In this document: in pieces, positions 3,721 through 63,993 of the stretch
Layout: every line of letters starts with the position of its first letter
How positions within the stretch are numbered: position 1 is the first letter of the stretch
Notes under the pieces: model-generated
Told to the model about the DNA's origin: nothing
What the model saw: only the letters and a program-made list of their open reading frames with translations
Databases searched by the model: none
Source of the DNA: Hemiscyllium ocellatum
Lineage: Eukaryota
DNA length: 64,000 nucleotides
Direction of reading: 5' to 3'
Assembly: GCF_020745735.1 (NCBI RefSeq)
Contig: NC_083409.1
Span: 13,515,259 to 13,579,258, forward strand
Program-made: the position numbers and the translations under genes

Positions 3721-6700
3721 CTCTGACTCAACCAGTTCTGTGCCCAGTGCTGGGAACATTTTAGACAAGACACCTTGTTGCCAGCTCGTTACTGCAACTT
3801 GATCCAGTTCAGTCAGAAAGAGACAAAGGACAATGTGCAGATTGTTGAACAGGCCCCTACACCTGGGCCTGAGGGAGGGGCCCAAGCTCCAACACACTAC
3901 ACACGAAATTTCAGACAGAGTGGGGTCATGAAATCTGTCCATATGTTCCTTTGGGACCGGAAAGGAATGAGGAAATAGAGGCAATTGTAGAAGAGTCAAT
4001 AAGGATTAAAGCAAGATTGAAGGAGAGTTTTGGAAAGGTTTTAGTGGAGAAAATATACTTTTTGCCACCCAATGCTGACGTAGTCTCCGTGTGTCACATC
4101 ATGAATAAAACAGCACACTACGAGGACAATCAAAAGTTACACAAAATTACTTCTTTTTGATATATCATAGCACGCAGACCATTTTCATTGTGGTGCAATT
4201 AGGTATCCTGGTTCAAAAGATGTTTTCTCTCTCTCTCTCTCTCTCTTTCTCTTTCCTCGTTTGTACAGATCGAGCTGGTTAGATCCTCACACAGCCCCAG
4301 TTTATTTGGACTGTTCAGTAATGTGGGGATGCCGATGTTGGACTGGGGTACACCTGATGAAGTAGCAGCGCTTCGGAAGCTTGTGATTTCAAATGAATCG
4401 GTTGGGCTAGAACCTGGTGTAGTGTGTCCTCTGACTTTGAAACAGCTGCTTTCTAGTTACTATGGAGGACTTCCACAGCTACTGAAGACTATGGGTAATG
4501 ACTCCTTCCATTAGCTGCAAACACACCAGTAGTCATTCCAGTGGATTCTAGTGGGAATGACCAATCAGTTGCTTTGACCTAGTTCCCCAGTTAATCAGGC
4601 CATGGCTGACCTGGAATACATTCTCCCTTTGTCCTGTAAACCGTACTGCCCTGAGTAAATGGCTACTGAAACCCAACCTCAACAGCTTTTTATTTTGGAT
4701 TGAGGGTTCCAGATTTCCATCACTCTATCCGAAGGAAATTTTCCTGAAATTGCCTGAATTACAATTTTGACATGCCTCTTGTACTGGACTCTGGGACTGG
4801 AGAAAGCAATTTACATCAACATTGTTCATCATCTCTGGGGAAAAGTAACGCTGATGTAGCCTGTTCTCTCTCATTAACAGTTTCTGATCTGAAGGTGACA
4901 TCACAGGCTGGATACTGAGAGGGTGGATCCTGTTATCGGGCAGACGAAAACTGGAGGGCCAGTTTAGCACAAAGTAGTCTCCCATTGAAAAGGAAGGAGG
5001 GGTTTTCTTGCTGAGGGTTGATAGCCTGTGGAATTCTGTTCTGTACATGGGAATGGAGGTTCACTCATGGAGTTGGCACAAGGTTAAAGTAGACAGATTT
5101 TTTGATGAACAAGGCAATTAAGGATAATGGGAGGGGGTGGGGAAGCAGAAAGTACAGGTGAGACAACACCCAGATAAGTAGTGATCTTCTTTATTGACAG
5201 AGCAGCTCCCAAAAGGCCTGCTCCTGCTCCTGGGCCCTATGTTCTGGCAGTGGCTGCAGCAATCCTGGACCCCCAGCTTTCCTTTGTCACTCACTGACAA
5301 AAATGACAAAAGTTAAAATTATTTTCTTTAACAAGACCAACTCAACTCTTGTTGCAGTCATTTTCTTTGCTGGATTTTAATTTCAGCAGGGTTTTAGAAA
5401 CACATCATTTGCCTTATGTTGCAGTGGAGACAGACACAGGGCAGTGAGGCCTCAGAGAGCACCGAGAGCTTTCACTCTGCACAACAAGGCTGTCAGCACA
5501 AGCATCTGGTGACAGGATTGTAGGGGGTTGAAAAGGAGAGAGTCACGGAGAAAAGAGACCTTATAGTTCAAAATAAAACCTCTTCATATATTCCCACACT
5601 CTAATGAATTAATGTTAGAGGATTAGAAACCCAGAACGGTGAGAGTGTGCTGGCTCAGAGGCTAAAAGGCAGAGAGCAAGGAGCTGCATTATTCCTTCTC
5701 ATTATTATTTCTGCTTCATCATTGGTGAGCTTCATAATTATTGCCCACCCCCAGTTGCTTGGACGAAGTTCTTTGCTGAGCCAGATCATGGGGTCATTAA
5801 AAATGGATCATGTCACAGTGGGGCAGGAGTCACAAACCGGGCTCCCTCACCGAAAGAACATTTGTGAACATCACATTGAATTTCATGTCTATTTTGTACA
5901 GATTCCAGCGCCTTCCTTTCCAGATATTACATGGCTCACCACCGCCCTCTCCAGGACAATTAGGGAAAGGCAACCAATAACCAACACGTCAACGCCTGCC
6001 CCATCCCGGGAGAAATCAGGAGAAATGATGTAAAATTAAAATAATCAAACTGGTGAGGCTTGAATTAATCTCTTTGAAAGACTGGACTCTCAGCCAGAAA
6101 CAGAGCCATGACATGGGTGACCCTGGTTTGTCAGACTGAAAGGTGAAGTGTCCTTTGGATTGACACTGGGATCAGCAAAAAATGAATTACTCTCAAAGAT
6201 CGAGCAAACAGCTATCAAAGTGGGTCACCAAACTGCAGAGTACAGCACCTGCAGCACCGCGTCCCCATCTCTATCCTTGCTGTTGCCCTTCCCTAACTGT
6301 CCTGGAGAGGGCGGTGGTGAGCCATGGGTTTCTTGAAGAGGGTCTGACAGAGGGACAAGGTCATGTCCTCGGCCTGAGCACAACTGTCTGACCTTCTGTG
6401 CTTTTCCAGCGCCACACTTTTTGACTCCGAGTAAACTATCCTTCAGGAGAATGAGCTGTGGCACAAGAGGAAACGTGGGAGTATTGGAAAGGCACCGGCA
6501 GCCTGGTCAGCCTGCAGAGGGGCAGAAACAGATTTGATGAATGAGATGATATCCTTCTAAGCTGAAATACAGACTTAGGCTTTCAGAGCTACACAGTTTA
6601 CATTGTTACTGACGGTGACTCCATGGGCAATGTTCCTGCTTCAGAGTCAAATGGTCACCTCAGAAATGAGAACACAGAATCCAGGTTGAGACTGCAGTGA

Positions 6701-14344: not shown

Positions 14345-14673
14345 CTACACACATTCTGATCTCCTGATGCTCTTGCTGAGGGGAGAGGGGAGGGTCACGT
14401 GGGTGAGGGCACAGGAGAAGCGAGCGTTGGACTCCCAGTCAGACCCAGAGAGGGTCAGCAGGCTGCTGACACTGTAAGTGCTGTCCGAAGCTCGCAGGTA
14501 GTTGCTGGTCTGAACCCCATCCGAAATGACTGCACCGTCCTTCTTCCACTGCACCTCCAGCTCATCGGGATAGAAGTGATTGGCAAGGCACACCAGGGTG
14601 GCAGTGCCCTTGGCATTGACCTGCTCCAGGGAGGGGAGCAGCAGGGTCAGCTTGGGCTGAGAGTTGTCACGGA
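14345..14673 (-). CDS. IGKC: Ig kappa-type (shark type III/NS4-like) light-chain constant exon, intact
   Basis: Acceptor ttctcttgtctttcAG at 14675-14674. Phase-1 exon of 329 nt reading (I)RDNSQPKLTLLLPSLEQVNAKGTATLVCLANHFYPDELEVQWKKDG...YSVSSLLTLSGSDWESNARFSCALTHVTLPSPLSKSIRRSECV-TAG. Both C1-set cysteines, the tryptophan and the terminal inter-chain cysteine are present. Confidence 0.96.
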
Positions 14674-15300
14674 CTGAAAGACAAGAGAAACAATTTTAAT
14701 CCCTGCCTTTTGAAGGTACATAAACTCTCTGAACATTAACTGCAAAAACGTTTGAACATTTGTACCCAGTACCTAGCAGACCTGACAAAGCACTGGCATT
14801 TTAAAAATTGCTTTTTGGGACGTGTACGGCACTGGCAGAGCCAGTCGCTGCCCATCCCTAATTGTCCTTGAGAAGGTGATGGTGACGCAGCAGAATGATA
14901 AGGTACAGTCCTGGACCACCATTTAAGGAATGAATGTGGGCAGCTGGAAGGGCTATCAATGTGGGAGCATTTTAGTGACAGTGATCGGAACTCAGTGAGA
15001 TTGAGATTAGGGATGGAAATGGAGAACCGTGGAGCAAGTGTAAAAGTTTTGATTTGGGAACAATCCATTTTACCAAACTGTGTGGTAATTTGATAAAAGA
15101 GTACTGGAACCATCGACTTGATGGGAGATCAGTGACAGGGCAGTGGGAGGTCTCCAAGGATGAGACAGGCACAGAGATCATTCAGAATCTTTTCCCAAAA
15201 GAGTAAGAGTGGCACTCCCAAAGAGAGAGTCTCAGCAAAGATGTGAAACTATTGATATGATGTGGAGGCTCTGGTGTCCGACTGGGGTGGACATGTTCAG

Positions 15301-15469
15301 GAGTCACATGACACCAGGTTACAGTTCAACAGGTTTATTTAAAATCACGAGCTTGTGAAACGCTGCTCCATCTTCAGGTGAAGCGACTTCAGTGCTGAAG
15401 GAACAGAGCTCTGAAAGCTTGTGATTTGAAGTAAGCCTGTTGGACTATAACCTGGTGTCATGTGACTTC
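15301..15469. repeat. Hairpin (inverted repeat with arms of about 54 bp) derived from Penelope-type terminal repeat
   Basis: gagtcacatgacaccaggttacagttcaacaggtttatttaaaatcacgagctt (15301-15354) pairs with aagcttgtgatttgaagtaagcctgttggactataacctggtgtcatgtgacttc (15415-15469). Single-arm relatives occur at about 4350-4440 and about 52680-52735. Confidence 0.75.
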
Positions 15470-16779
15470 TGACCTCAAATGAAGCCCCGTTAGCGCACAG
15501 TGAGAGAACTGTGTGCAGTTCTGGTCACCACATTGCAGGAAGGATGTGATCCCCCTAGAGATGGGGACAGTGGAAGATTTTGTCAGGAATGAGGAGTATT
15601 AGCTTTGAGGAATGATTGGTTTGGCTGGGACTAGTTTATTTGGAACACAGGAGGCTGAGGGGAGATTTGATCGATGGTGTGTAAAATGATGAGGGGTTTG
15701 GATAGAGTGGGTAGGAAGGACTGATTTCCATCAGCACAGAGGGCAATAACCATGGGGAGAGATTGAAATGAATTGGGGGCAGGGTTCGAGGCGAGTTGAG
15801 GAGTAATTGTTTCACCCAGTGGCTGGTGGGATCAGGACCTCACTAGCTGAAAGGGTGAGAGCGGCAGAAACCCTCATCACATTGAAAAAACACTTGGATA
15901 TTCACTTGAAACACCAAAGCCTCCAGAGCTATGGAGCAAGAGCTGGTATGTGGGGTGGAGTTCGACACCTCTTTAACAAACCTCTGATCACTCACAGCTC
16001 GGGAGAACTTTATCCAACAATATTGGAGCAGAGTTGGATCAGCACACTTCAGGAAGGAGTCACGTTGGGTGTCCATGTAGAACGTTCTAGATTTTGTTTC
16101 AAATCTTCCAGCTCAGCGCTGGGGTAAGGTCAAATGTGAGGGTGCAAAGAGTCTCAGTGTCCCGGGATCAGACAGTGTCACTGCTCTTAATGATCCCATG
16201 TTCCCTGGAAGATGGAAGCGTGTATCCAACGGGCAAGGGTCAGGTTCAGGAGACTCCAACCACAAAGAAAGACTTGCATTTATGTTGCACCTGCCTCCAC
16301 CTAAGGATGTCGCAGTGGCTCTTTCCATCAGACTGTGCTCAGCAAGATCCCAGAGAGCTGGGTGACAATGAGGCGAGGATCCGATTTTTAGTGATGCTCA
16401 TTAGGGAATCAATATTGACCAGGACACCAGGAGACACCGTCCTGCTGTCTGTCTAATAGAGCCATGGAATGGCATCTCTGATATCTGAAAGGCTCCCAGT
16501 GCATCAAAAGAGAGACTTGTATGTCAGGCTCTCCCAAAGCATTTACAGAGAGTGAGGGACTTGTCTGGACACTGGTCACTGTTGTAATGCAGAAAACACA
16601 ATTTGTACACAGCAATATCGCGCAATCGTAAATGAGATTATGAAGCATGTTCAGTGATGTTTCAGGGATAAATATTGACCTGAAGTCAACTCAAAGAGAA
16701 AGCAAATGGGTTCACTTGCACAGAACGTGAGAAAATGAAAGGCACAGGAGAAAGTGGGAGTCGTGGTTAGTGATGGGTT

Positions 16780-18270
16780 TGATTGTTACCAGAAAATAAA
16801 AGGAAGGATCAGAATTTGTGAATGTCATATTGTAACAAGGCAATACAGACAGTAGAAATAACCTAAAGTCTTTGTATGATAACGCATTCGGAATAAGGTA
16901 GACAGAGTGATGCCACAAGTTGAGGTTCCCAAAGACTTTAAAATCATTAAAGTGAGGCAGGGCTCAGGAGACGTTAGTAAAGTTTCCAGAATAATTAATA
17001 GGACATAGATTATGGAAAGGGTCAGAAAATTAATTTTAGGCACAGTGCATAAGGGGACAACTATGAAAAGGAGGGTAGTCAATGCAGGACTGAGGGTGTT
17101 GTACCTGAATGCAGGGAGTATCCGAAATGAGGTAAATGAGCTTGTAGCGCAGATTGGAATTGGCAGGTATGATGTTTTGAGTATCACATAGACCTGGCTG
17201 TAAGGGGTTGAGGGCTGGGAATGAAATACTCAAGGATGCACATCCGATTGACAGGACATGCTGATGGGCAGATGGGGGTGGGGTTACCTTCTTGGTAAGA
17301 AATGAAATGAGATCAATCACAAGAAGGGATTTAGAGTTGGAATGCATTCAATCTGTGTGGGTAGAGTTGAGGAGTTGCAAGGGAGAAAGAGCATGATGAG
17401 AACTTAGCACAGGACCCCCCAGCAGCAGTCAGGATATGAGGAAGAAAATAAATCAGGTGATAGAGAAGGCCCTGCTATAATAGTCATGAGGGACTTCAAT
17501 ATGCAGGGAGACTGGAAAATTAAGTTGTTTGGGGATCTCAAGGGTAGGAATTAATGGAATGCTTACGACATGGTTTTTGGAGCAGCTTGTGGTAGAGATC
17601 ACTATGGAACAGGCAATTCTGGATTGGGTGATGTGTATTGAAGCAGACCTGATTAGGGAACTTAGGGTAAAGGAGTCCCTTGGGGGCATTGACCGTAATA
17701 TGACAGAATTCACCCTGCAGTTTGTGACAGAGAATCTGGAGTCAGTTGTACCGGTAATGCAATTAACTTAAGGTAACTACAAAGACATGGGGGAGGAGCT
17801 GGCCAGAGCTGGTAAGAAAGGAAGCTGAGCATAAGAGAGAATGGAGCAGCAATGGTAGGAATTTCTGGGGGTAATTTGGGAGGCAGAGCAGGAATTTAAC
17901 CCAAGGAAGAAGAAAGGTACTGAGTGGAGGCCAAGGCAACCATGGCTGATGAGGGAAGTCAGGGTCAGCATAAAAGCAAAAGAAAAAACATGCAATGTGG
18001 TGAAGATTATTGGGAAGCCGGAGGATTGGGAAGCCTTTAAAAAACAGGAGAGAGTAACTAAAAAAAAGGTAAGGATGGGTGTGTAAATAAAATATAAGGG
18101 TCAGCGAGTTAGTAACATAAAAGAGTATTGCAAGAGGTTTTCTTTAGATATATGAAAGGCAAGAGGGAGTCAATAATAGAAATTGTACCACTGGAAAAGG
18201 CAGAAGTAGTAATGGGGAACAAAGAAATGGTGGAAAAAGTGCATCGGTGCCTTAAATCAGCTTTCACAGT
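16780..18270 (+). mobile_element. CR1 ORF2 N-terminal (APE endonuclease) fragment
   Basis: Remnants of LYLNAGSIRNEV...YDVLSIT*TWL and MTTWFLEQLVVEITMEQAILDWV (ORF 17529-17771). Confidence 0.8.
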
Positions 18271-18272
18271 AG

Positions 18273-18887
18273 TGTGGCAATGCTGCTCATTTCACAAGTT
18301 TGAGTTGTCCTTGGATTTTTTTTTCAAGAGGGGTTGTAAAGGCAGAGGTTCCAATTTGTCTGGGTTAGGGACTTTGCTCATGTCTAACAGATACTGCCTA
18401 AGGCAACAGTCAGGGAAAAGGCTTTTAGGTTTTATATTAAACACTTGTCCAATAAAAGGAGAGTGGCCAGTTCTTCCAGTTTGCTGTTTTTGACAAACAG
18501 TCGGTTGGAAGCTCCTGGATAAAGAAAGCTGCTGGTGAGAAAGGTTCCCCAATTCAACATTTTCCAGTGGACTCACTGTCTGAAATTCCTCTCCTGTAAG
18601 AACCCCTGTGTTTATCTTTACCTTTTTGCCAAGGCTATTACAGCAAATTGGAACAACTCTTTGTCAAGTTACATTTTTTCGTCAGTTAGGTTTTCAAATA
18701 GTTAAGTTATTCTAAATTCTGTTTTCTTTTGATTGTAAATAAATACTCTTCTCCTTCAAGCTGAGTGGTTTGGCCAGTTGTATCATTCCTGGAATATCCA
18801 GGTTACATTTGCTGAACACAATTCGAAAAGGTAAGGTCTGGGCTGCATTCTTAAAATGTTTTGAAGGGTCTGGCCTGGCCCATAACA
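18273..18887. mobile_element. Probable solo LTR (615 bp, TG...CA)
   Basis: Non-LINE block interrupting a CR1. It begins TGTGGC, ends ggcctggcccatAACA and contains AATAAA. No target-site duplication could be confirmed because a CR1 tail abuts the right end. Confidence 0.45.
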
Positions 18888-18889
18888 AT

Positions 18890-20340
18890 GTCACAGAGTC
18901 CTACAGCATGGAGACAGGCCATTTGGACCAAACTGGTCCATGCCAACCAAAATGTCCATTTACGCTAATCCTACACTTGGCCCATATCCTTCTGAATCCT
19001 TTCCTTTGCTGTATTTGTCCAAATGCCTTTTAAATGTTATTAATGTACCCACCTCAACCACTTCCACTGGCAGCTCATTCCATATGCGAACAATCCTATG
19101 TGTAAAAAGGTTGCCCCTCAGGTTCCCTTTTATTCTTTCCCCTCTAACCTTAAACTGATGCGCTCTAGCTCATATTCGCAAACCTTGGGGAAAAGACCGA
19201 GTGAATTCACCCTATCCATGCCTCTCATGATCTTATGAGGTCCTCCCTCAGTCTCCTACACTCTAAAGAAAAAAGTACTCTCCCTTTAACCCAAACGATT
19301 GAATCCTGGCAACATGCTTGCAAATTTCTTCTGCACTCTTTCCAGTTTAATAACATCCTTCCTGGAACAAGGTGACCAAAACTGAACACAATATTCCAAG
19401 TGTGGCTTCATCAGTGTCCTGCATAACTGCAACATAACTTCCCAACATCTGTAGTCAATGCTCTGACTGATGAAGGGCACTGCAGAAAAAGCTCTCTTCT
19501 CTGCTCTATTTACTGTGACTCCATTTTCAGAGAACTGCTTATCTGAATTCTAAGGACCCTCTGTTCCATTATATTCCTTAAGGTCCTATCATTCACCATG
19601 AAACTCCTACCTTGCTTTAAATTTCCAAAATACAAGACCTCACATTTGTCTGTATTAAACTCTATTTGTCATTTCTCGGCCCACTTCCCCAGCTGAGCAA
19701 GGTCCTGCTGCAATTTCTGATAACTGTCCGCACTGTCCACAATGCTGCTTATTTGAGTGTCATCAGCAAACTCACTAACCATGCCTTGTACATTCTCATC
19801 CAAAACATTGTTATAGATAACAAACAGCAATGGGCTCAGCACTGAACACTGAGGCACACCACTAGTCACAGGCCTCCAGTACAATAAGGATTCTTCCCCT
19901 ATTACCCTGTGCTTTCTACCATCAAGCCAATCGTGTATCCAATTTGCCAGGTCACCTTGGATTCCATGCGATCTAACCTTCCATAACAGCCTACCATGTG
20001 GAACCTTATCAAAGGCCTCACTGAAATCCATATAGACCACGTCTACCATCCTGCCCTCATCAACCTTCCTGGTAAATTCATCAAAGTACCTTAACAAATT
20101 TGTGAGGCATATTCTCCCACTCACAAAGTCATGCTGACAACTCCTAATCAAATTCACTCTTTCCAAATGCATGTGTACCTTATCTTATCAAACAACTTAC
20201 CCACCACAAATGTTAAGCTTATAATTCCCAGGCATTTGTTTCTCAGCCCTTTTTGAACAATGGCACAATCTTCGCTATCCTCCAGTCTTCTGGCACCTCA
20301 CCTGTGGCTAACCATGATGCTTAAATATCAGCCAGTACAC
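18890..20340 (-). mobile_element. CR1 RT to 3' end
   Basis: ORF 19669-20172 (VYMDFSEAFDKVPHGRL, SEFADDTQI), ORF 19286-19480 and a terminal tail at about 18890. Confidence 0.88.
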
Positions 20341-20349
20341 CTGACCTTC

Positions 20350-21990
20350 AAGAGAGTTGGGAGCAAAAGTGAGTGGAAAGGGCATCACTAAGGTGGAGGG
20401 GTTGAGGCAGCTGAAAGGTCTGAAGGTGGATAAATCATTCAGACCCGATGGACTACACTCCAGAGTTCTGATGGAGATAGCTAAGGTAATTGTAGGGCCA
20501 TTGGCTGTGATCTTTCAGAAATCACTGGAGTCAGGAGTGGTCCCAGAAGACTGGAAAATAGTGAATGTAACATCCCTGTTTAAGAAAGGAGGGAGGCAGA
20601 GATGGGACATTATAAGCTGGTTAGCCTGACCTCGGTCATTGGTAAGATTTTAGAGGTCTATCTAAGGGTGAGATTGCAGGTATTTGGAATCTCACCCTTA
20701 AGTCTGGTAAAATTGCAGCCTGGCAAAATTGGGCTGAGTCAGCACAGCTTCATCAAAGGGAGACATGCCTGATAAATCTGTTAGAAATCTTTGAGGAGGT
20801 AACAAGTGAGTTAGACAAAGGAGAGCCAGTGGATGTGATCCATTTGGATTTCCATCAGGCCTTTGACAGGGTACAATAAAGGAGACTGCTTAGTCAAATC
20901 AGAGCCCATGCTGTCAGGAGCAAGGCACTGCGAATTGTAGAGGATTGGCTGGCCGGCACAAAGGCGAGAGTAGGGACAAAGGGATTTTTTTCTGGATGGC
21001 TGGTGGTGCTTTGTGGTGATCCTCAGGGATCTGTGTTGGGACCACAACTATTCACATTATCCATTAACAATCTGGATAAGGAACTGAAGATATTGTTCAT
21101 ATGTTTGTAGATGACACAAAAATTGGTGAAAGGACAGGTGGAGTTGAGGAAGTGGGGGAGATTGCAGAAGGACTTGGTCAGGCTGGGAGAATGTACAAAG
21201 AAGTGGCAGGTGGAGTACAATGCGGGGACTTGTGAGGCTAGATACTTTGGTGGGAAGAATAGAGACACAGAATGTTTTCTAAGTGAGGAAAGATTTCAGA
21301 AATCTGAAGCACAAAGAGAATTGGGAGTCCTTGCTCAAGTTTCTCTGAAGGTTAACGTGCAGATTCACCATTGGCTGTTTGAAAGGCAGTTACAATGTTA
21401 GCATTAACTTTAACGTCAGAGGTGTACTGCTGCGTTTGTATAAGTCTGTAATCAGACCACATTTGGAATTTTGGTCTCCTTATTAAGGAAGGATGTGCTG
21501 TCATTGGAGAGGGTCCAGAGGAAAAAGAGAGAAAGAATAAGAATACTCCTGGGAATGAAGGGGGTGTCATATAAAGAGTGGTTGAGGATTCTGGATCTGT
21601 ATACAATTGTGTTTAGAAAGATGACGGAGGAATCTTATTGAAACTACAGAATATTGAGAGGCCTGGAGAACATGGAGAAGGTGTTTCCACGAATAGAAGA
21701 AACTCGGGCCCAAAGGCAAAGCCTCAGAGTGAAGAATGATCCGTCAGAACTGAGGTAAGGAGGCATTTCTTCAGCCACAGGGTGGTGAATCTGCGGAACT
21801 CATTGTCACAGAGGTCTATGGATGCCAAGATGTTGAGAGTATTTAAAACAGAGACAGATCGGTTCTTGATCAGTAAGGAGATCAAAAGTTAAAAGGAGAA
21901 TGGGGTTGAGAAACACATCACACAAGATCAAATGGCAGAGCAGACTCTCTTGTGACTGGCCCAATTCTGCTCCTATATCTTAAGTATTTT
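20350..21990 (+). mobile_element. CR1 RT to 3' end
   Basis: ORFs 20357-20629 (KVDKSFRPDGLHSRVL) and 21111-21401, with a CR1 3' UTR. Confidence 0.85.
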
Positions 21991-22035
21991 GGGTTTATGT
22001 AGAGGTTCCTTGAATCCCTGGAAAACTGGAAGTAC

Positions 22036-22350
22036 AGTCACTTAGTGGTTAGCCCTGCTGCCTCACAGCGCTATGGGCCCAGGTTTGATTGTAGCCTCGG
22101 GCGTCTGTCTGTGTGGAGTTTGCATGTTCTCCCTGTGCCTGTGTGGGTTTCCTCCGGGTGCTCTGGCTTCCTCCCACAGTCCAAAGCTGTGCAGGTTCGG
22201 TGAATTGGCCATGCTAAATTGCCCATAGTGCAGGTTAGGTACATTAGTCAGGAGTAAATGGACGTTAAAAAGGTAGGGGAATGGGTCTGGGTGGGTTACT
22301 GTTCGGAGGGTCAGCGTGGACTTGTTGGACCAAATGGCCTGTTTCCATAC
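22036..22350 (+). mobile_element. HE1-like V-SINE, near full length
   Basis: tRNA-like head, V-domain (gtgtggagtttgcatgttctccc...gggtttcctccgggtgctc...ttcctcccacagtccaaag) and a CR1-like 3' tail. Confidence 0.88.
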
Positions 22351-22379
22351 TGTAGGAATTCTGTGATTGTATGGACATT

Positions 22380-23520
22380 GGAAGTACTGGTTTGTGGGCC
22401 CTGCTGTTGCTGTTTCTCAAAAGAACTTTGACAAAAGATAATCAGGGATTGGTGAGAGTGAGCATCAGGTTGCATGAGGGAACTGCTTGTCCTGCTTCCT
22501 GGAATACCATGAGTACAGGAAGTGTGGTCAGTGACAGCAGTTGGAACTCCGGGTTTCGGAGCTTGAGCAGCAGCTGGTGTCAGTGAGGAACGTCCGTGAG
22601 GCTGAGAGCTCCGTAGAGAGCACGTTTCTAGATGTGGTCACTCTGCAGTTTCAGAGTATGCAGGGAGAGAGGGAATGGGGGAGCAGCAGACAGTCCAAAA
22701 GGACCAGGCAGCTAGTACAGGAATCCCATGAGTGCATCCCACTCTCCAACCAGGATTCAGTTTGGAATCCTGATCAGAATGATGGTTCATCTGGGCAGTG
22801 CAGCCAGAGCCAAGTCCCTGCCACCATGGGGGGCTCAGCTGTACACGGGGGGCACAAGGAAGACTGGAAGAGCAATAGTGAGAGGAGATTCGAGAGTGAG
22901 GGCATCAATAGGTGTTTCTGCAGCTGCAGATGAGAATCCAGGATGGTGTGTTGTCTCCCTGGTGCCAGGGTGAAGGATGTCACTGAGCGACTGCAGAGCA
23001 CCCTGAGGGGAGAGGGGGAACAGGCAGCAGTCGTGGTCCACATCGGTCCCAGTGACAGTGGGAGAAAAGGGATGTGGTCCTCCAGTCAGAATTTAGGGAG
23101 TTCCAGAGGGAATTAGCAGCAGGAGCTCAAAAGTAGGAATCTCCAAGATTACCCCCAGTGCCCCACACAACTGAGAATAGAAAGAGGAGGATAGCACAGG
23201 TGACGGTGGAACTGAAAAGACAGTCCAGGAGGAAGGTCTTTCGATTATTTTAACATTGGGACTGGCTTTGGGGGGAGATGGACATGTACAGACCAGACGG
23301 GTTGCTCCTGAACAGACCTGGGACTGAGTTCCTTTGGGGTGATTTACTCGTGCTGTTGGAGAGGGTTTAAACTATCTTGGCCTGTGGGATCCAGGAGCTA
23401 ATACCAGAGAGGAACACAGAGGTGCACAGAATCCTGGGAGAGATAGATAGCACCAGAATAAGGAATAGAACTTCTGACCCAGTTTCAGAGTGAGGGAGAG
23501 AGAGTAATAAATTCTAAATC
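22380..23520 (+). mobile_element. CR1 ORF1 (coiled coil plus SGNH esterase-like domain), decayed
   Basis: ELRVSELEQQL (ORF 22541), GRAIVRGDSRVR and VCCLPGARVKDVTERL...VVVHIG, and HWDWLWGRWDMYRPDGLLLNR in mixed frames. Confidence 0.8.
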
Positions 23521-23659
23521 AGGGTCACTGTGTAAGGATGGGTCTGCACGGAGTGTTGGGAATAAGACTGGGAAGGTACAGCCACAGAGTGTTAAGTGGA
23601 AATCTGATGTGTGTCTCTCACATCGGAAGATAAGGTAATAAGAACATTAGAAATAGGAG

Positions 23660-24150
23660 CAGGAGTGGGCTATCTGACCCATTGAGGATGAGGGATGTTA
23701 GTTATGAAGATAGACCGAAGACGTTGGGACTGTTTTCCTCAGAGAAGAGAAGGCAGAGGGGAGATTTGATTGAGAAATTCAAAATCAGGAGGGGTCTGAA
23801 CAGAGTAAACTAGGAGAAAATGTTCCCACCTGAGAAAGAATTGAGAGGGAGAGGCCATGGATTGAAAATAATTAGTAAAAGAGGCAAAAGTGAGATGAGT
23901 GCGAAACATTTTCAGCCAGTGGGTGGTTAAGGTGTGGAATGCACTGCCTGAGAGTGTGGTGGAGGCAGCTTCAATTGAAACATTCTGAAGGGAATGAGAC
24001 TGTTATTTGAAAAGGAACAATGTGCAGGATGACAGGGAGAAGGCAGGAGAATGACACTCAGTGAATTGCTCATTCGGAGAGCCGGTCCAGACAGGATGGG
24101 TGGAACGGCCTCCGTGTACACTGTAACAATTCTGTGATTGTGTGATTGAG
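23660..24150 (+). mobile_element. CR1 3'-end fragment
   Basis: CR1 terminal coding remnant (gagaagagaaggcagaggggagatttgattgag) and a (TGTGAT)n-like tail. Confidence 0.7.
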
Positions 24151-24192
24151 CAGAGTTAAAGCTGGGGGAGGTGGGAGCTCGGTGTCTCACTG

Positions 24193-24194
<2 letters not shown>

Positions 24195-24227
<33 letters not shown>
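24195..24227. repeat. (CTG)11 microsatellite
   Basis: Read directly from the sequence. Confidence 0.95.
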
Positions 24228-24588
24228 AGGTCAGTGAGATCAGGGACTGGGACAGGGAGCCAGAGCTCACATCAAACTCTGCCCCGTGTCCGTCACACTG
24301 AGACTGGCAGGAGGCTACTCACTGATTTCACTCCATGCTGCAGGAATGGGACCACAGGCTGCAAATGGACAGAGCTCCTCCACATGGTGAGTAAAGCTGA
24401 CTGACTTATATCTTGCTGCTTAAGCAGGGCAATAGGACGACAGAAATACAGCTGGACACCCTGTTAGACACAGTGCTCCTCAATCATTCACTGCAGCTCC
24501 CCACTAACACCTGCATCAATTCAGCATTTGTGATTTAGAAAGTTTCAGTATTGAAAGGGTTAATAACGGAGGATTGAGGTTTACTTAC

Positions 24589-24917
24589 TCAGTCTGAGCT
24601 TGGTTCCTTTACCGAACGTTAAGGCCAGCTGTAATCCTGCATACAGTAATAGTCAGCGACATCCTCATTCTGAATGTTGCTGATTGTCAGGGTGAAACTG
24701 GTCCCTGATCCACTGCCGGTGAATCGATCGGAGACTCCTGTGAATCGATTTGTTGCAGCATAGATCAGGAGAGAGGGTTTCTGACCTTCTCGCTGCTGGT
24801 ACCAGGAAAGCTCATTGTTAACTGATTGACTGGCCGTACAGGTGATGGTTGCGGTCTGGCTCAGTCCCACTGACCGCACCGGGGGAGACTGAGTCATGAT
24901 GATGTCCCTACTGATAC
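24589..24917 (-). pseudogene. IGKV-J: Pre-joined Ig kappa V-J exon, out of frame, with a stop codon at the junction
   Basis: Acceptor ccctcAG at 24919-24918. Reads (G)[101 protein letters not shown], then in a shifted frame ACG TTC GGT AAA GGA ACC AAG CTC AGA CTG A (TFGKGTKLRL) and GTAAGT. No heptamer or nonamer lies between V and J. The 329-nt length is incompatible with phase 1/1 (it needs 327 or 330). Confidence 0.94.
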
Positions 24918-25103
24918 CTGAGGGATCAGAGAGAAACACAGTGAAGTCAGAACTGTCACAGAAAGAGCCGGTCAAATGAGAGATTGTTGGAGACACTGAG
25001 CATTCCTCTGGTTTCAGCATTTTCCCATCAATCACAAGTCAGTGGAATTGGAGTGAAATGGAGAGCAGCTAAAGATTCAAGGTGGAAGGAGAGAGATTTG
25101 TAC

Positions 25104-25152
25104 CTGCGACACAGAATGCCAGGGGCCAGATCAGCTGGATGTGTGAAATCAT
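25104..25152 (-). CDS. IGKV: Ig kappa leader exon (L1)
   Basis: cacaccATG ATT TCA CAC ATC CAG CTG ATC TGG CCC CTG GCA TTC TGT GTC GCA G then GTACAA; encodes MISHIQLIWPLAFCVA(G). A 186-bp intron separates it from the V exon. Confidence 0.92.
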
Positions 25153-25212
25153 GGTGTGTGCTCCTGTCCCTGTGCCTGGTTCCTGATAAACTCTCCCTTC
25201 ACTGGGCTCTGC

Positions 25213-25309
25213 TTTATAAAGCTCCAGCCTGTGAGAGTCTGACTGGGTGTTCCTCAGTATGTAAATAGCATCAGGCAGAGAGAGCCACGTCAGCCCCTCA
25301 CACTTCCTC
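25213..25309 (-). promoter_or_regulatory. V-kappa promoter: TATA (25213-25220), variant octamer ATTTACAT (25259-25266), CRE-like TGACGT, PU-box GAGGAAGT (25302-25309)
   Basis: The order and spacing match the established Ig light-chain promoter layout (octamer about 107 bp upstream of the ATG, then TATA). The octamer differs from ATTTGCAT at one base. Confidence 0.72.
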
Positions 25310-51239: not shown

Positions 51240-51252
51240 NNNNNNNNNNNNN
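51240..51252. other. Assembly gap (13 N)
   Basis: Run of N; the true gap size and the join are unknown. Confidence 0.99.
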
Positions 51253-53434: not shown

Positions 53435-53955
53435 CCCTTTTTCAGATTCACATTGACAGAAAAAAAACTGCAATTAACAGCCCAGACAGAGAAAGCTGCT
53501 CAAAATCACAGCCACAATGGAGTTTAAGGAAAACACTGTGTGAGATTTGCTCAATAACATGAGAATTCTGTCCCTTTAAACAGTGACAAAACCTTAAATG
53601 GGAACTGACAGCTAAGCAGGAAGAAGATCTGGTTTAATGAAGCAGAGACTTCTGAGGTTCACATTGTTTTGTACAGCTGACAGTCTTCAGCAAAATTCAA
53701 GAGATTTACTTGGCATACAGTCAACACTTCCGCATCAAACACTCCCCGGACAAGGACAGCATGAACTTTGACATAGTGTAATGTCTCTCAAAACTGTCGC
53801 AGTGACCGACTTCAACATCCAAACCTCAGACGTATCTCTGAGCCAGTCCTGACAAGGAGGGAGTTGAAATTCAGTGCTAACAATGACCTTTGTCCTGCCA
53901 GCTCAGCTCTATTCTAAGTAAAGTTGTGTCTCCTCTGTGGACTGTCTCCAACACT

Positions 53956-54287
53956 TTACACACATTCTGATCTGCTGATGCTCTCTCTGAGGGAGACGGG
54001 AGGGTCACATGTGAGGGCACAGGACAAACGACGTCGGACTCCAGTCAACCCAGGAGGTCAGAGTGAGCCAAGTAGCAGCTGCTGACACTGTAGGTGCTGT
54101 TCAAAGTTCGCAGGTAGTTGCTGGTCTGAACCCCGTCCGAAATGACTGCACCATCCTTCTTCCACTGCACCTCCAGCTCATCGGGATAGAAGTGATTGGC
54201 AAGGCACACCAGGGTGGCAGTGCCCTTGGCATTGACCTGCTCCAGGGGGGGGCAGCAGGGTCAGCTTGGGCTGAGAGTTCTCACGGC
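53956..54287 (-). pseudogene. IGKC: Ig kappa constant exon, copy 2, frameshifted; no V or J in the window
   Basis: Intact acceptor, then (S)RENSQPKLTLL. A G8 run at 54245-54252 replaces the 10-nt gggaggggag of copy 1 (a 2-nt loss). The last third has a 13-nt insertion and several small deletions. It ends GAA TGT GTG TAA. Confidence 0.88.
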
Positions 54288-56234
54288 CTGAAAGACAAGA
54301 GAAACAATTTTAATCCCTGCCAAACAAATGGATTTTGACTCTCAGTATATTCACTGGCAATACAATCTTATTGACCATTTATAGTCAATACAGAATAAAC
54401 TCGACAAAAGAACAGGTATTGTTTAAATTGCTTCTTGGGATATGAGAGTCACTGCCAGGACCAGCATTTATTGCCCATCCCTAATTGCCCCGGAGAAGGT
54501 GATGGTGAAAGAGAAGGGACAGTTTTAGACCATTGTTTAGGGAATAAATATGGGCAGCTGGAAGGACTATCAATGGGAGAGCATTTCAGTGACAGTGATC
54601 AGAACTCAGTGAGACTGAGAGTAGGGATGGAAATGGAGAACAATGGAGCAAGTGTAAAAGATTTCATTTGGGAATGTACTATTTTACTAAACTGTGCAGT
54701 GATTTAGCAAAAGTGGACTGAAACTGTGGATGGAATATCAGTGTCAGGGCCTCGAATGATGAGACAGAGATTGTTCAGAATCTGTTCCCACAATGAGTAA
54801 GGGTGGGACTCCCAAATCTAGACTCTCAGCCTGGGATGTCAAAAGGCAGCAGAGTAGGGAAGACCAAACAGTGATGGTGATGTTGTTATCTGGAGATCAA
54901 ACCTGCAGAAAGCTGAGAGGAGGATAGAAAATGCAGGGTGACATTGAACAGGACCTGAGGAAAGCAAAGAGCTGACAGGATGAAGTATGTCCAACTGAAT
55001 CAGGGAAATCCCAATGAACAAGAGGATTGGGGTCATGTACTGACATGGATTGGGAACTGGTTGGCAGACAGGACAGAAACAACAAGTCTTTTCCTGAATG
55101 GCAGGTAGTTACCAATTGTCATACTACAGGGGTCAGTCCTTGGTAACCCAGTTATTCATAATATACAATCATAGAATCATAGAGACCCAAAAGGCCCATC
55201 AGCCCATTGTGTCCATACTGATCAAAAAATAACAACCCAATAATTCTCATCCATTCTTCCAGCATGAGGGAATTAGATGTGGTATGTGTTCAAGAAGGAA
55301 TTAGATATTGTTCTTAGGATTAAAGGGATCAAAGAATGTGGGAGAAAGCAGGAACAGGGGATTGTGTTGGATGATCAGCCATGATCATATTGAATGGTGG
55401 AGCATTCGAGGTGTGTAAAATGATGAGGGCCCTGGACAGAGTGGGTAGGAAGGACTGATTTCCATCAGCAGAAAAGCAATAGCCATGGAGAGAGATTGAA
55501 ATGAATTGGGGCAGGGTTTGAGGGGAGTTGAGGAGTAACTGTTTCCACCCAGAGGCTGGTGAGAACTGGGACTTACTGACTGAAAGGGTGGAGAGGCCAA
55601 AACCATCATCACATTGAAAAAACACTTGGTCATTCACTTGAAACAGCGAAGCCTCCAGAGCTATGGAGCAAAAGCTGGAAAGTGGGATGGAGCTCAATAC
55701 ATCTTTAACAAACCTGCTATCACCCACAGATCAGGAGAACTTTATCCGAGAACATTGGAGCAGACTTGGATCCACACACTTCATTGGGTGTCCATGTGGA
55801 AGGTTCCAGATTACATTTCAAACCTTGCTGCACACGAATGGGCTGAATCAAGGGTGAGGCTACAAAGAGTCTCACTGCCCCAGGGTCAGCCAAGGTCACT
55901 TCTCCTAATGACTCAATGACCCCTGGAAGGTGAGAGTACACGGACAATGGGTGATGGTCAGGATCAGGAAGCTCCAACCTTAAAGAAAGACTTGAATTTG
56001 TGTAGCACCTGTTCCCAACTCAGGATGCCCCAATGGCTCTTTCCAGCAGAGTGTGCACAGTAAGATCCCAAACACATTATGATAATTAGCAGGGAAATAG
56101 ATTTTTATTGATTTTGATTGGGTATAAGTATTGACCAGGGCACTGGGGAACTGCCTGCTCTTCCTCCAATGGTGTCATGGAATGGCATCTTTCACAACTG
56201 AAGGATTCCCAGTTCATCCAAAAAAAAGTATAGT

Positions 56235-60999: not shown

Positions 61000-63993
61000 A
61001 AAGTTAGAACAAGAGAAGTCAAGAAGGACAACTGTAGCAATGAGGCAGAAAATTTGAAAAGGGATCATGCTGTAAGGTTGAGTGAATAGGGGTTGATGGG
61101 AAGGGTGAGAGCAGTAACAAATTAAAAATACTGTATATGAATGCACGAAGCATTAGAAATAAGATGGATGAGCTTGAGGCTCCTTTGGAAATTGGCAGAT
61201 ACGATATTGTGGGGATAACTGAGACGTGGCTTCAAGTGGACAGGGCCTGGAAATGAATATTCAAGGCTACACGTGCTATCGTAAGGACAGACTGACAGGC
61301 AGAGGGGGTGGAGTGGCCTTGTTGGTAAGGGAGGATATTCAGTCCCTTGCGCGGGGGGACCTAGAGTCAGGGGATGTAGAGTCAGTGTGGATAGAGCTGC
61401 GAAATACTAAAGGTAAAAAGACCCTCTTGGGAGTCATCTACAGGCCCCCAAACAGTAGTCTGGATGTCGGATGAAAGTTAAATCAGGAGCTGAAATTGAC
61501 CTGTGGTAAAGATGTTACTACAGTTGTTATGGGGGATTTTAACATGCTGGTAGACTGGGAGAATCAGGATGGTATTGGACCTTATGAAAGAGACTTTGTG
61601 GAGTGCCTCAGAGATAGATTCTTAGAGCAGCTGGTGCTGGAGCCGACCAGGGAGAAGGCAATTCTGGATCTAATGTTGTGTAATGAACCAGAATTGGTCA
61701 GAGACCTCGAAGTGAAGGAGCCATTGGGAAGTAGTGACCATAATACAATAAGTTTCAATCTGCAATTTGAGAGGGAGAGGTACAGTCGGAAGTGACAGTA
61801 CTTCTGTTGAATAAAGGGAACTATGGAGCTATGAGGGAGGAGCTGGCCAAAGTTCAATGGTGCAATACCTTAGCAGGGATGACCGTGGTGGAACAATGGC
61901 GGGTATTTCTGTGTATAATGCAGAAGTTGCAGGATCAGTTCATTCCTAAAAGGAAGAAAGATCCCAGGAGGAGGCATGTGCGGCCGTGGCTAACGAGGGA
62001 AGTTAAGAACCATATAAAGTTAAAAGAGAAAAAGTATAACAGAGCAAAGATAAGTGGGAAAACAGAGGACTGGGAAGCTTTTAAAGAACAACAGAGGATT
62101 ACTAAGAAGGAAATACGCAGAGGCAAAATGAGGTACGAAGGTAAACTGGCCAATAATATAAAGGAAGATAGTAAAAGCTTTTTCAAGTATGTGCAAGGCA
62201 AAAAAATGGTTATGACTAAAATTGGGCCCTTGAAGACAGAAACAGTGGAATATATTACAGGGAACAAAGAAATGGCAGAAGAATTAAATGGGTACTTCAG
62301 ATCTGTGTTCACTGGGGAAGACACAAGCAATCTCCCTGAGGTAACAGTGACTGAAGGACCTGAACTTAAGGGAATCTGTATTTGCCAGGATTTGGTGTTG
62401 GAGAGACTGTTAGGTCTGAAGGTTGATAAGTCCCCGGGGCCTGATGGTCTACATCCCAGGGTACTGAAGGAGGTGGCTCGGGAAATCGTGGATACGTTGG
62501 TGATGATTTTCCAGAATTCGATAGATTCGGGATCGGTACCTGAGGATTGGAGAGTGGCTAAAGTTATACCACTTTTTAAGAAAGATGGGAGAGAGAAAGC
62601 AGGAAATTATAGACCAGTTAGTCTGACCTCAGTGGTGGGAAAGATGCTGGAGTCTATTATAAAGGATGAGATTACAGCACATCTGGATGGTAGTATCAGG
62701 ATAAGACAGAGTCAGCATGGATTTATAAAGAGGAAATCGTGCTTGACTAATCTTCTGGAGTTTTTTGAGGATGTAACTCTGAGGATGGATGAGGGAGATC
62801 CAGTAGATGTAGTGTACCTGGACTTTCAGAAAGCTTTTGATAAAGTTCCACATAGGAGGTTAGTGAGTAAACTTAGGGCGCATGGTATTGGGGACAAAGT
62901 ACTAGATTGGATTTAAAATTGGTTGGCTGATAGGAAACATTGGGTAGTGATAAACGGCTCCATTTCAGAATGGCAGGCAGTGACCAGTGGGGACCGCAAG
63001 GATCCGTGCTGGGACCACAGCTTTTTACAATATATGTTAATTATATAGAAGATGGTATCAGCAATAACATTAGCAAATTTGCTGATGATACAAAGCTGGG
63101 TGGCAGGGTGAAATGTGATGAGGATGTTAGGAGATTACAGGGTGACCTGGACAAGTTAGATGAGTGGGCAGATGCATGGCAGATGCAGTTTAATGTGGAT
63201 AAATGTATGGTTATCCACTTTGGTGGCAAGAACAGGAAGGCAGATTACTACCTCAATGGAATTAATTTAGGTAAAGGGGCAGTACAGAGAGATCTGGGTG
63301 TTCTTGTACACCAGTCAATAAAGGCAAGCATGCAGTTACAGCAGGTAGTGAAGAAGGCTAATAGCATGCTGGCCTTCATAACAAGAGGGATTGAGTATAG
63401 GAGCAAAGAGGTGCTTCTGCAGCTGTACAGGGCCCTGGTGAGACCACACCGGGAGTACGGTGTGTAGTTCTGGTCGCCAAATTTGAGGAAGGACATTTTG
63501 GCTATTGAGGGGGTGCAGCGTAGGTTCACGAGGTCAATTCTGGAATGGCGGGATTACCTTACACTGAAAGACTGAAGCGACTGGGCTTGTATACCCTTGA
63601 GTTTAGAAGACTGAGAGGGGATCTGATTGAGACATATACGACTATAAAAGGATTGGACACTCTGGCAGCAGGAAACATGTTTCCGCTGATGGGTGAGTGC
63701 CAAACCAGAGGACACAGCTTAAAAATTTAGGACAGAGATGAGGAGAAACTTCTTCACCCAGAGAGTGATGGCTGTATGAAATGCTCTGCCCCAGAGGACA
63801 GTGGAGGCCCAGTCTCTGGATTCATTTAAGAAAGAGTTGGATAGAGCTCTCAAAGATAGTGGAATCAAGGGTTATGGAGATAAGGCAGGGAGTGGATACT
63901 GATTAGGAATGATCAGCCATGATCATATTGAATGGCGGTGCAGGCTCGAAGGGCCCAATGGCCTACTCCTGCACCTATTGTCTATTGTCTATT
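61000..63993 (+). mobile_element. CR1 LINE with complete ORF2 span (APE endonuclease plus RT), inactivated
   Basis: LKILYMNARSIRNKMDEL...YDIVGITETWL at about 61122 onward; ORFs 61226-61474, 61496-61795, 61792-62916 and 62940-63467 are broken by frameshifts and stops; (TCTATTG)n tail. Confidence 0.93.

Follow-up and report, generated by a model that had tools for sequence, protein, structure and literature searches.

The main evidence that the V(D)J recombinase occasionally acts in germ cells, and thereby reshapes the genome, comes from antibody genes that are joined in the germline. The closest described system is found in the NS4 genes of the nurse shark. Six germline-joined NS4 genes were reported from nurse-shark erythrocyte DNA by Lee, Fitch, Flajnik and Hsu (J Exp Med 2000), and the joined genes were shown in seven wild animals (PMC2193156). 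Four of the six are in frame (R4, R7, R18 and RE18) and two are pseudogenes (R6 and R19); in R19, one base of the CDR3 must be omitted to restore the frame (PMC2193156). The germline joints were analysed as products of RAG: their ends are trimmed, P bases may be present and N addition is hardly evident. In shark NS4 cDNA, several N bases are often found at somatic joints (PMC2193156). The in-frame joined genes are expressed early in life, and the NS4 leader intron is 186 bp long (PMC2193156). Our search for literature on joined kappa genes in bamboo sharks found none.

We analysed a stretch of 64,000 nucleotides of Hemiscyllium ocellatum DNA, called the window below, which contains an NS4/type III kappa light-chain cluster on the minus strand. 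The cluster extends from 25152 to 14345, and all of its parts lie on the same strand: promoter motifs, a leader, a leader intron, a single V-J exon, a J-C intron and a C exon. We regard it as likely that this gene is a germline-joined kappa cluster of the NS4/type III kind, a pseudogene created by a RAG-type join that was out of frame from the start. For comparison, we used four clusters in which V and J are split (L001, L002, L003 and L005) and one joined gene (L004), all from an older, independent assembly of Chiloscyllium punctatum; the split relatives thus come from another assembly, and the true progenitor, one among about 200 clusters, may be absent from this set. The features of the window gene are as follows.

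25259-25266, minus strand: octamer-like motif ATTTACAT of the promoter, 114 nt upstream of the ATG and conserved in the split genes L001, L002 and L005 (alignment)
25212-25220, minus strand: TATA-like motif TTTATAAAG, conserved in all four aligned genes
25104-25152, minus strand: leader exon, MISHIQLIWPLAFCVA and the initial base of the codon that follows (direct reading; tblastn)
24918-25103, minus strand: leader intron of 186 nt, GT...AG (direct reading and alignment)
24589-24917, minus strand: continuous V-J exon of 329 nt (direct reading)
24621-24917, minus strand: V part of the V-J exon, kept through ...TGG CCT T (Pfam V-set, E 1e-15)
24620, minus strand: single A that matches, in no split relative, either the end of V or the start of J; second letter of the TAA stop
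24619-24621, minus strand: in-frame stop TAA at the seam (direct reading; open reading frame ends at 24619)
24589-24619, minus strand: J part ACG TTC GGT AAA GGA ACC AAG CTC AGA CTG A (TFGKGTKLRL), one base out of the V frame
14674-24588, minus strand: J-C intron of 9,915 nt with donor GTAAGT and acceptor TTTCAG (exon borders)
14345-14673, minus strand: C-kappa exon, an open frame of 108 codons plus TAG (tblastn; Pfam C1-set, E 3.7e-21)

The anatomy and the reading frame of the gene were read directly. The end of V reads GAC TAT TAC TGT ATG CAG GAT TAC AGC TGG CCT TAA CGT (5' to 3', minus strand), and CCTTAACG is the joined form across the seam. The ACG of J begins two bases after CCT, and the frame is therefore lost. 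The length of the exon leads to the same result: of its 329 nt, 2 nt belong to the leader codon and 1 nt to the C codon, and the other 326 nt cannot be divided by three, leaving the V-J exon one base short. The last base of J is 24589 and the donor GT lies at 24588-24587. The gene is unable to encode a light chain, because the V frame ends in a stop at the V-J seam. No other disabling lesion was found in the gene, and it may still be transcribed, as its promoter motifs, splice sites and C exon are intact. A first-pass annotation of this DNA had described V and J as already joined in the genome, one base short and with TAA at the joint; its letters, coordinates and frame for the seam are all correct on direct reading of the minus strand, which gives an exon of 329 nt and an open reading frame that ends at 24619. 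The same annotation had argued that the join took place in DNA, and this is borne out by the two introns. A processed retrocopy of a rearranged light-chain mRNA was considered and rejected, because both the 186-nt leader intron and the 9,915-nt J-C intron are kept, with GT...AG borders.

The length of the J-C intron is normal for this subfamily, since Hemiscyllium kappa gene models span 9.2-9.75 kb in total. The intron contains a reverse-transcriptase fragment at 19672-20172, and other such fragments are scattered through it. It also contains a (CTG)n microsatellite of about 10 units at 24198-24228, about 370 nt downstream of the J donor.

The relatives of the gene were sought at the DNA and protein levels. 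The leader is 100% identical to the leaders of Hemiscyllium and nurse-shark kappa chains (tblastn). The closest V proteins are those of C. punctatum P0001 (86% amino-acid identity), H. ocellatum (83%) and nurse-shark NS4 cDNA (82%). The C exon has 93.7% identity to Hemiscyllium and 91.6% to the nurse-shark NS4 C (tblastn), and differs from that of C. punctatum P0042 at 3 residues. At the nucleotide level, the 5' flank, leader, intron and V together are 96% identical to the C. punctatum split gene L001 over 695 columns, and J from ACG onward is identical to the J of L001 and L005. Because this nearest available relative is split, the joined state is derived. The 4% divergence from L001 bounds the age of the join only from above. 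Exact-product look-ups in other assemblies, made with the 133-aa and 138-aa open reading frames that end at the seam, returned no match on record. When proteins were searched with the C exon, the sole matches were shark-like fragments that are filed under bacterial names. Three records of this kind (P0030, P0045 and P0046) are shark kappa V-like or C-like fragments on contigs of 299-990 bp that are filed as Salmonella enterica and Aeromonas veronii, and they are most likely fish DNA that contaminates bacterial assemblies.

In the split genes, V ends in CCTTGA; next come CACAGTG, a 12-nt spacer and ACAAAAACC. On the J side, GGTTTTTGT, a 23-nt spacer and CACTGTG stand before J, which starts with GCTTACG, GCATACG, GTTCACG or GCTTCCG. 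The V-J spacer of the split genes is 450-600 nt long and bears both recombination signals. The window is collinear with L001, L002, L003 and L005 through the 5' flank, leader, intron and V, and the homology resumes in J and the 3' flank (blastn and MAFFT). Between these parts, the window is without the whole spacer and both signals, and the gap opens shortly before the end of V and closes shortly after the start of J. The exact extent of this deletion relative to the split relatives is a direct observation. No heptamer-spacer-nonamer signal was found anywhere in the 64-kb window. The sole heptamer-like word near the seam, CACTGTG at 24475, has no nonamer and belongs to J-downstream sequence that is common to the split relatives.

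The seam is parsed in the same way against every split relative: V ends in CCTT, with 2 nt (GA) trimmed; a single A follows; and J begins at ACG, with 4 nt trimmed. The A at 24620 could have been added as an N nucleotide, could come from a germline variant of J or could have arisen later by substitution. If it is a changed form of the base before ACG, which is T or C in known J segments, J would have been trimmed by 3 and nothing would have been added. Because the stop codon TAA includes A 24620, which fits neither the V nor the J of the relatives, it may itself have arisen by substitution after the join. No P nucleotides could be assigned at the seam, and none can be claimed since both ends are trimmed.

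By our own rough estimate, the chance that a random deletion in a unit of 1.1 kb would have both its ends no more than 4 nt away from the heptamer borders is about 2e-5. Endpoints at the heptamer borders therefore point to RAG-type cleavage followed by end joining, and the seam looks like the trace of a RAG-type deletional join in which no more than one base was added. From the sequence, we infer a germline event, RAG as its agent and an origin out of frame. In the proposed course of events, a split V-spacer-J cluster would have been cut at both recombination signals, in a RAG-like manner, in an ancestral germ-cell lineage. The spacer of about 0.5 kb and both signals would have been lost, and the coding ends would have been trimmed (V by 2 nt, J by 3-4 nt) and ligated, with no more than one base added. 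This would leave the V-J exon one base short, so that translation from the leader stops at TAA. The first-pass annotation had likewise stated that no recombination signal or intervening DNA remains and had proposed a RAG-type deletional join with apparently little or no N addition, and it had called for an alignment to paralogs to assign trimmed, P and N bases. Our tests support this reading: the signal search of the window was negative, the V and J homologies abut when aligned to the split genes with blastn and MAFFT, the deletion ends lie within 2 nt of the V signal border and within 4 nt of the J signal border, at most one base is non-templated, and the alignment resolved the joint into the parse given above.

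A kappa gene model of H. ocellatum bears on this reading. P0003 (GCA_020745735.1) reads ...SSWPLRSVKEP, that is, its J is in the same wrong register as that of the window gene. As far as the letters of its joint can be taken from the protein model, P0003 would have two bases between CCT and ACG, as the window gene has. It differs in that its V has 83% amino-acid identity to the window gene and its joint codon is Leu, not a stop. P0003 lies on a 116-Mb scaffold, with V fused to J out of frame. A further model, P0040, lies on a 72-kb contig and reads through a V-J spacer and J-signal sequence, and is therefore split. These two models have an identical leader plus V (115 residues) and an identical C (105 residues), and they span 9,235 and 9,753 bp, respectively; the difference of 518 bp is about the size of one V-J spacer. 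P0003 and P0040 are thus a candidate before-and-after pair, possibly allelic, and this join could still be polymorphic.

Whether the window gene has been inherited in its joined form was approached through its divergence. Changes specific to its lineage were counted in the 5' flank, intron and V only; J and the 3' flank were dropped because MAFFT had set the J of the window against the signal region of the split genes. In V, the private changes replace Gly by Arg at the leader cleavage site, Leu11 by Arg and Gly16 by Ser. These three replacements stand at columns that are invariant in 23-24 shark kappa sequences, and in a control over 26 sequences a count of three was tied for the highest and was not an outlier, while the count of 1 in C was unremarkable. 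The C exon, 10 kb away, carries P12L, and at the J/C codon Ser is replaced by Ile. Of the two Pro-to-Leu changes in C, one is common to a neighbouring decayed C exon and P0018 and was not counted as private. This mild drift would fit an inherited dead gene, and we give it modest weight. We infer the germline status of the join from the scaffold consensus together with this drift.

Several other explanations of the seam have to be weighed. One is a deletion unrelated to RAG, in which replication slippage or microhomology-mediated repair removed the spacer by chance. Nothing that would specifically favour it was found. The probability of this is almost negligible, because both ends of the deletion lie 2-4 nt from the heptamer borders of four split relatives and microhomology at the seam is neither needed nor seen. 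A somatic origin takes the RAG-type joint as given and moves it to a lymphocyte, whose non-productive allele would have been captured by the assembler. The seam does resemble any non-productive somatic V-J joint, and of the six V changes found only in the window lineage, four are G to A. However, with many clusters and a polyclonal population of B cells, any one somatic joint should make up a tiny share of the reads, and it would be too rare to set the consensus of a chromosome-scale main scaffold. Furthermore, private changes are also present in the C exon 10 kb downstream, which is beyond the reach of hypermutation, and a joint to which no more than one base was added is like the germline joins and unlike the N-rich joints of NS4 cDNA (PMC2193156). 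We therefore consider the capture of a somatic allele to be extremely improbable. An error of one base in the assembly consensus, hiding a joined gene that is in frame, is very unlikely. The seam does contain short runs (CC TT AA), and one missing base there would give a canonical CDR3. These runs are, however, just 2 nt long, which is an unusual context for indel errors, and such an error would have had to strike a target of just 3 nt. In addition, the private replacements, one at the leader cleavage site and two at invariant framework positions, are in keeping with a gene that is not functional.

A germline join that is real, RAG-made and faithfully assembled could still have begun in frame, for example as ...WP-x-TFGKG, and could have been broken later by loss of a base at the seam or gain of a stop after selection had ended. 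Insertion of one more base does give CMQDYSWP-Y/x-TFGKG, a canonical kappa CDR3 of 9 residues (compare ...YPYTFGPG in P0042). The stop codon contains A 24620, which matches neither the V nor the J of the split relatives; there is some drift elsewhere in the gene; and of the nurse shark's six joined genes, four are in frame (PMC2193156). On the other hand, the length of the seam is that of a plain join of V trimmed by 2 and J trimmed by 3, with no added base, and its register is the same as in Hemiscyllium P0003, so that no extra deletion is needed. The rest of the gene is intact, and a second hit exactly at the seam would be a coincidence. We thus regard a later loss of frame as unlikely, and a join that was out of frame from its origin is, by our rough estimate from the sequence, several times more probable.

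The window also contains a second kappa C exon, at 53950-54320 on the minus strand, in the same orientation as the first and about 39.6 kb from it. This exon is 90% identical to the first and is broken by several small insertions and deletions. The intron upstream of it matches the J-C intron of the first cluster at 65-81%, and this homology extends up to about 62700; the V-J of the second cluster is therefore expected just beyond the end of the window. On the basis of these alignments, the second C exon is interpreted as part of a decayed tandem duplicate cluster. A stretch of about 85 nt is repeated near both ends of the window, at 578-662 and 62486-62570, and probably represents two copies of one retroelement. 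The window also has a run of 13 N at 51240-51252.

The occurrence of more than one out-of-frame joined kappa gene in this genome raises a wider possibility, which we put forward tentatively and hold to be somewhat doubtful: these genes may not be independent accidents but either a duplicated family of one or a few dead clusters, or the outcome of frequent, ongoing and frame-blind RAG activity in the germline. The P0003/P0040 pair fits ongoing RAG activity, since one member is joined and the other split, with identical V and C and spans 518 bp apart. If such ongoing frame-blind activity is real, the ratio of in-frame to out-of-frame genes over the approximately 200 clusters would be a direct measure of selection on joined genes. 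An out-of-frame join is the clearest sign that germline joins are accidents and not selected products. This argument was already made for the nurse shark in 2000, and the present case is a further data point and does not add a new principle. Its value would be greater within a census of all joined clusters in the array of about 200, covering the frequency of joins, their independence and the selection on in-frame joins.

The known systems allow the gene to be placed. Compared with R19 and R6 of the nurse shark, the window gene is of the same NS4/type III kappa class, with the same cluster layout and a leader intron of the same 186 bp. In all three, V is fused to J, the spacer of about 500 bp and both signals are gone, trimming is small and N addition is little or none. 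In all three, the frame is broken in the CDR3, and the promoter and splice signals are kept. R19 carries one extra base and further stop codons, and R6 is disrupted in many places; the window gene lacks one base and is otherwise free of disabling lesions. Moreover, the closest DNA and protein matches of the window gene are from Chiloscyllium and not from Ginglymostoma. The germline origin of R19 and R6 was proven by erythrocyte DNA and seven individuals, whereas that of the window gene is probable.

The in-frame joined genes R4, R7, R18 and RE18, and also L004, represent the same kind of event and the same architecture, but they are readable and the window gene is not. L004 is in frame (…CMQDYSVPQTLSFGKGTKLQL|GTAAGT), so that a joined kappa gene is also present in the independent bamboo-shark assembly. 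It lies at 6499-6580 on the plus strand of its locus, on the 1.65-Mb C. punctatum scaffold BEZZ01000502.1, and reads TGT ATG CAG GAT TAT AGC GTG CCT CAA ACA CTT TCA TTT GGT AAA GGA…|GTAAGT. Its constant region has 10 private replacements at otherwise invariant columns. Non-productive somatic joints of V-kappa and J-kappa in B cells are similar to the window gene in the deletion from signal to signal, the trimmed ends and the out-of-frame outcome, but each of them is confined to a single clone and would not set the consensus of an assembled genome. The link to the nurse-shark NS4 family that the first-pass annotation had drawn is correct, although the novelty is lower than it had implied, because out-of-frame joined NS4 genes are already in the earlier work (PMC2193156). 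Broken germline-joined NS4 genes have been known in the nurse shark since 2000, and the present gene is a real but ordinary member of that kind. In its sequence, the window gene has every feature of the germline-joined NS4 class.
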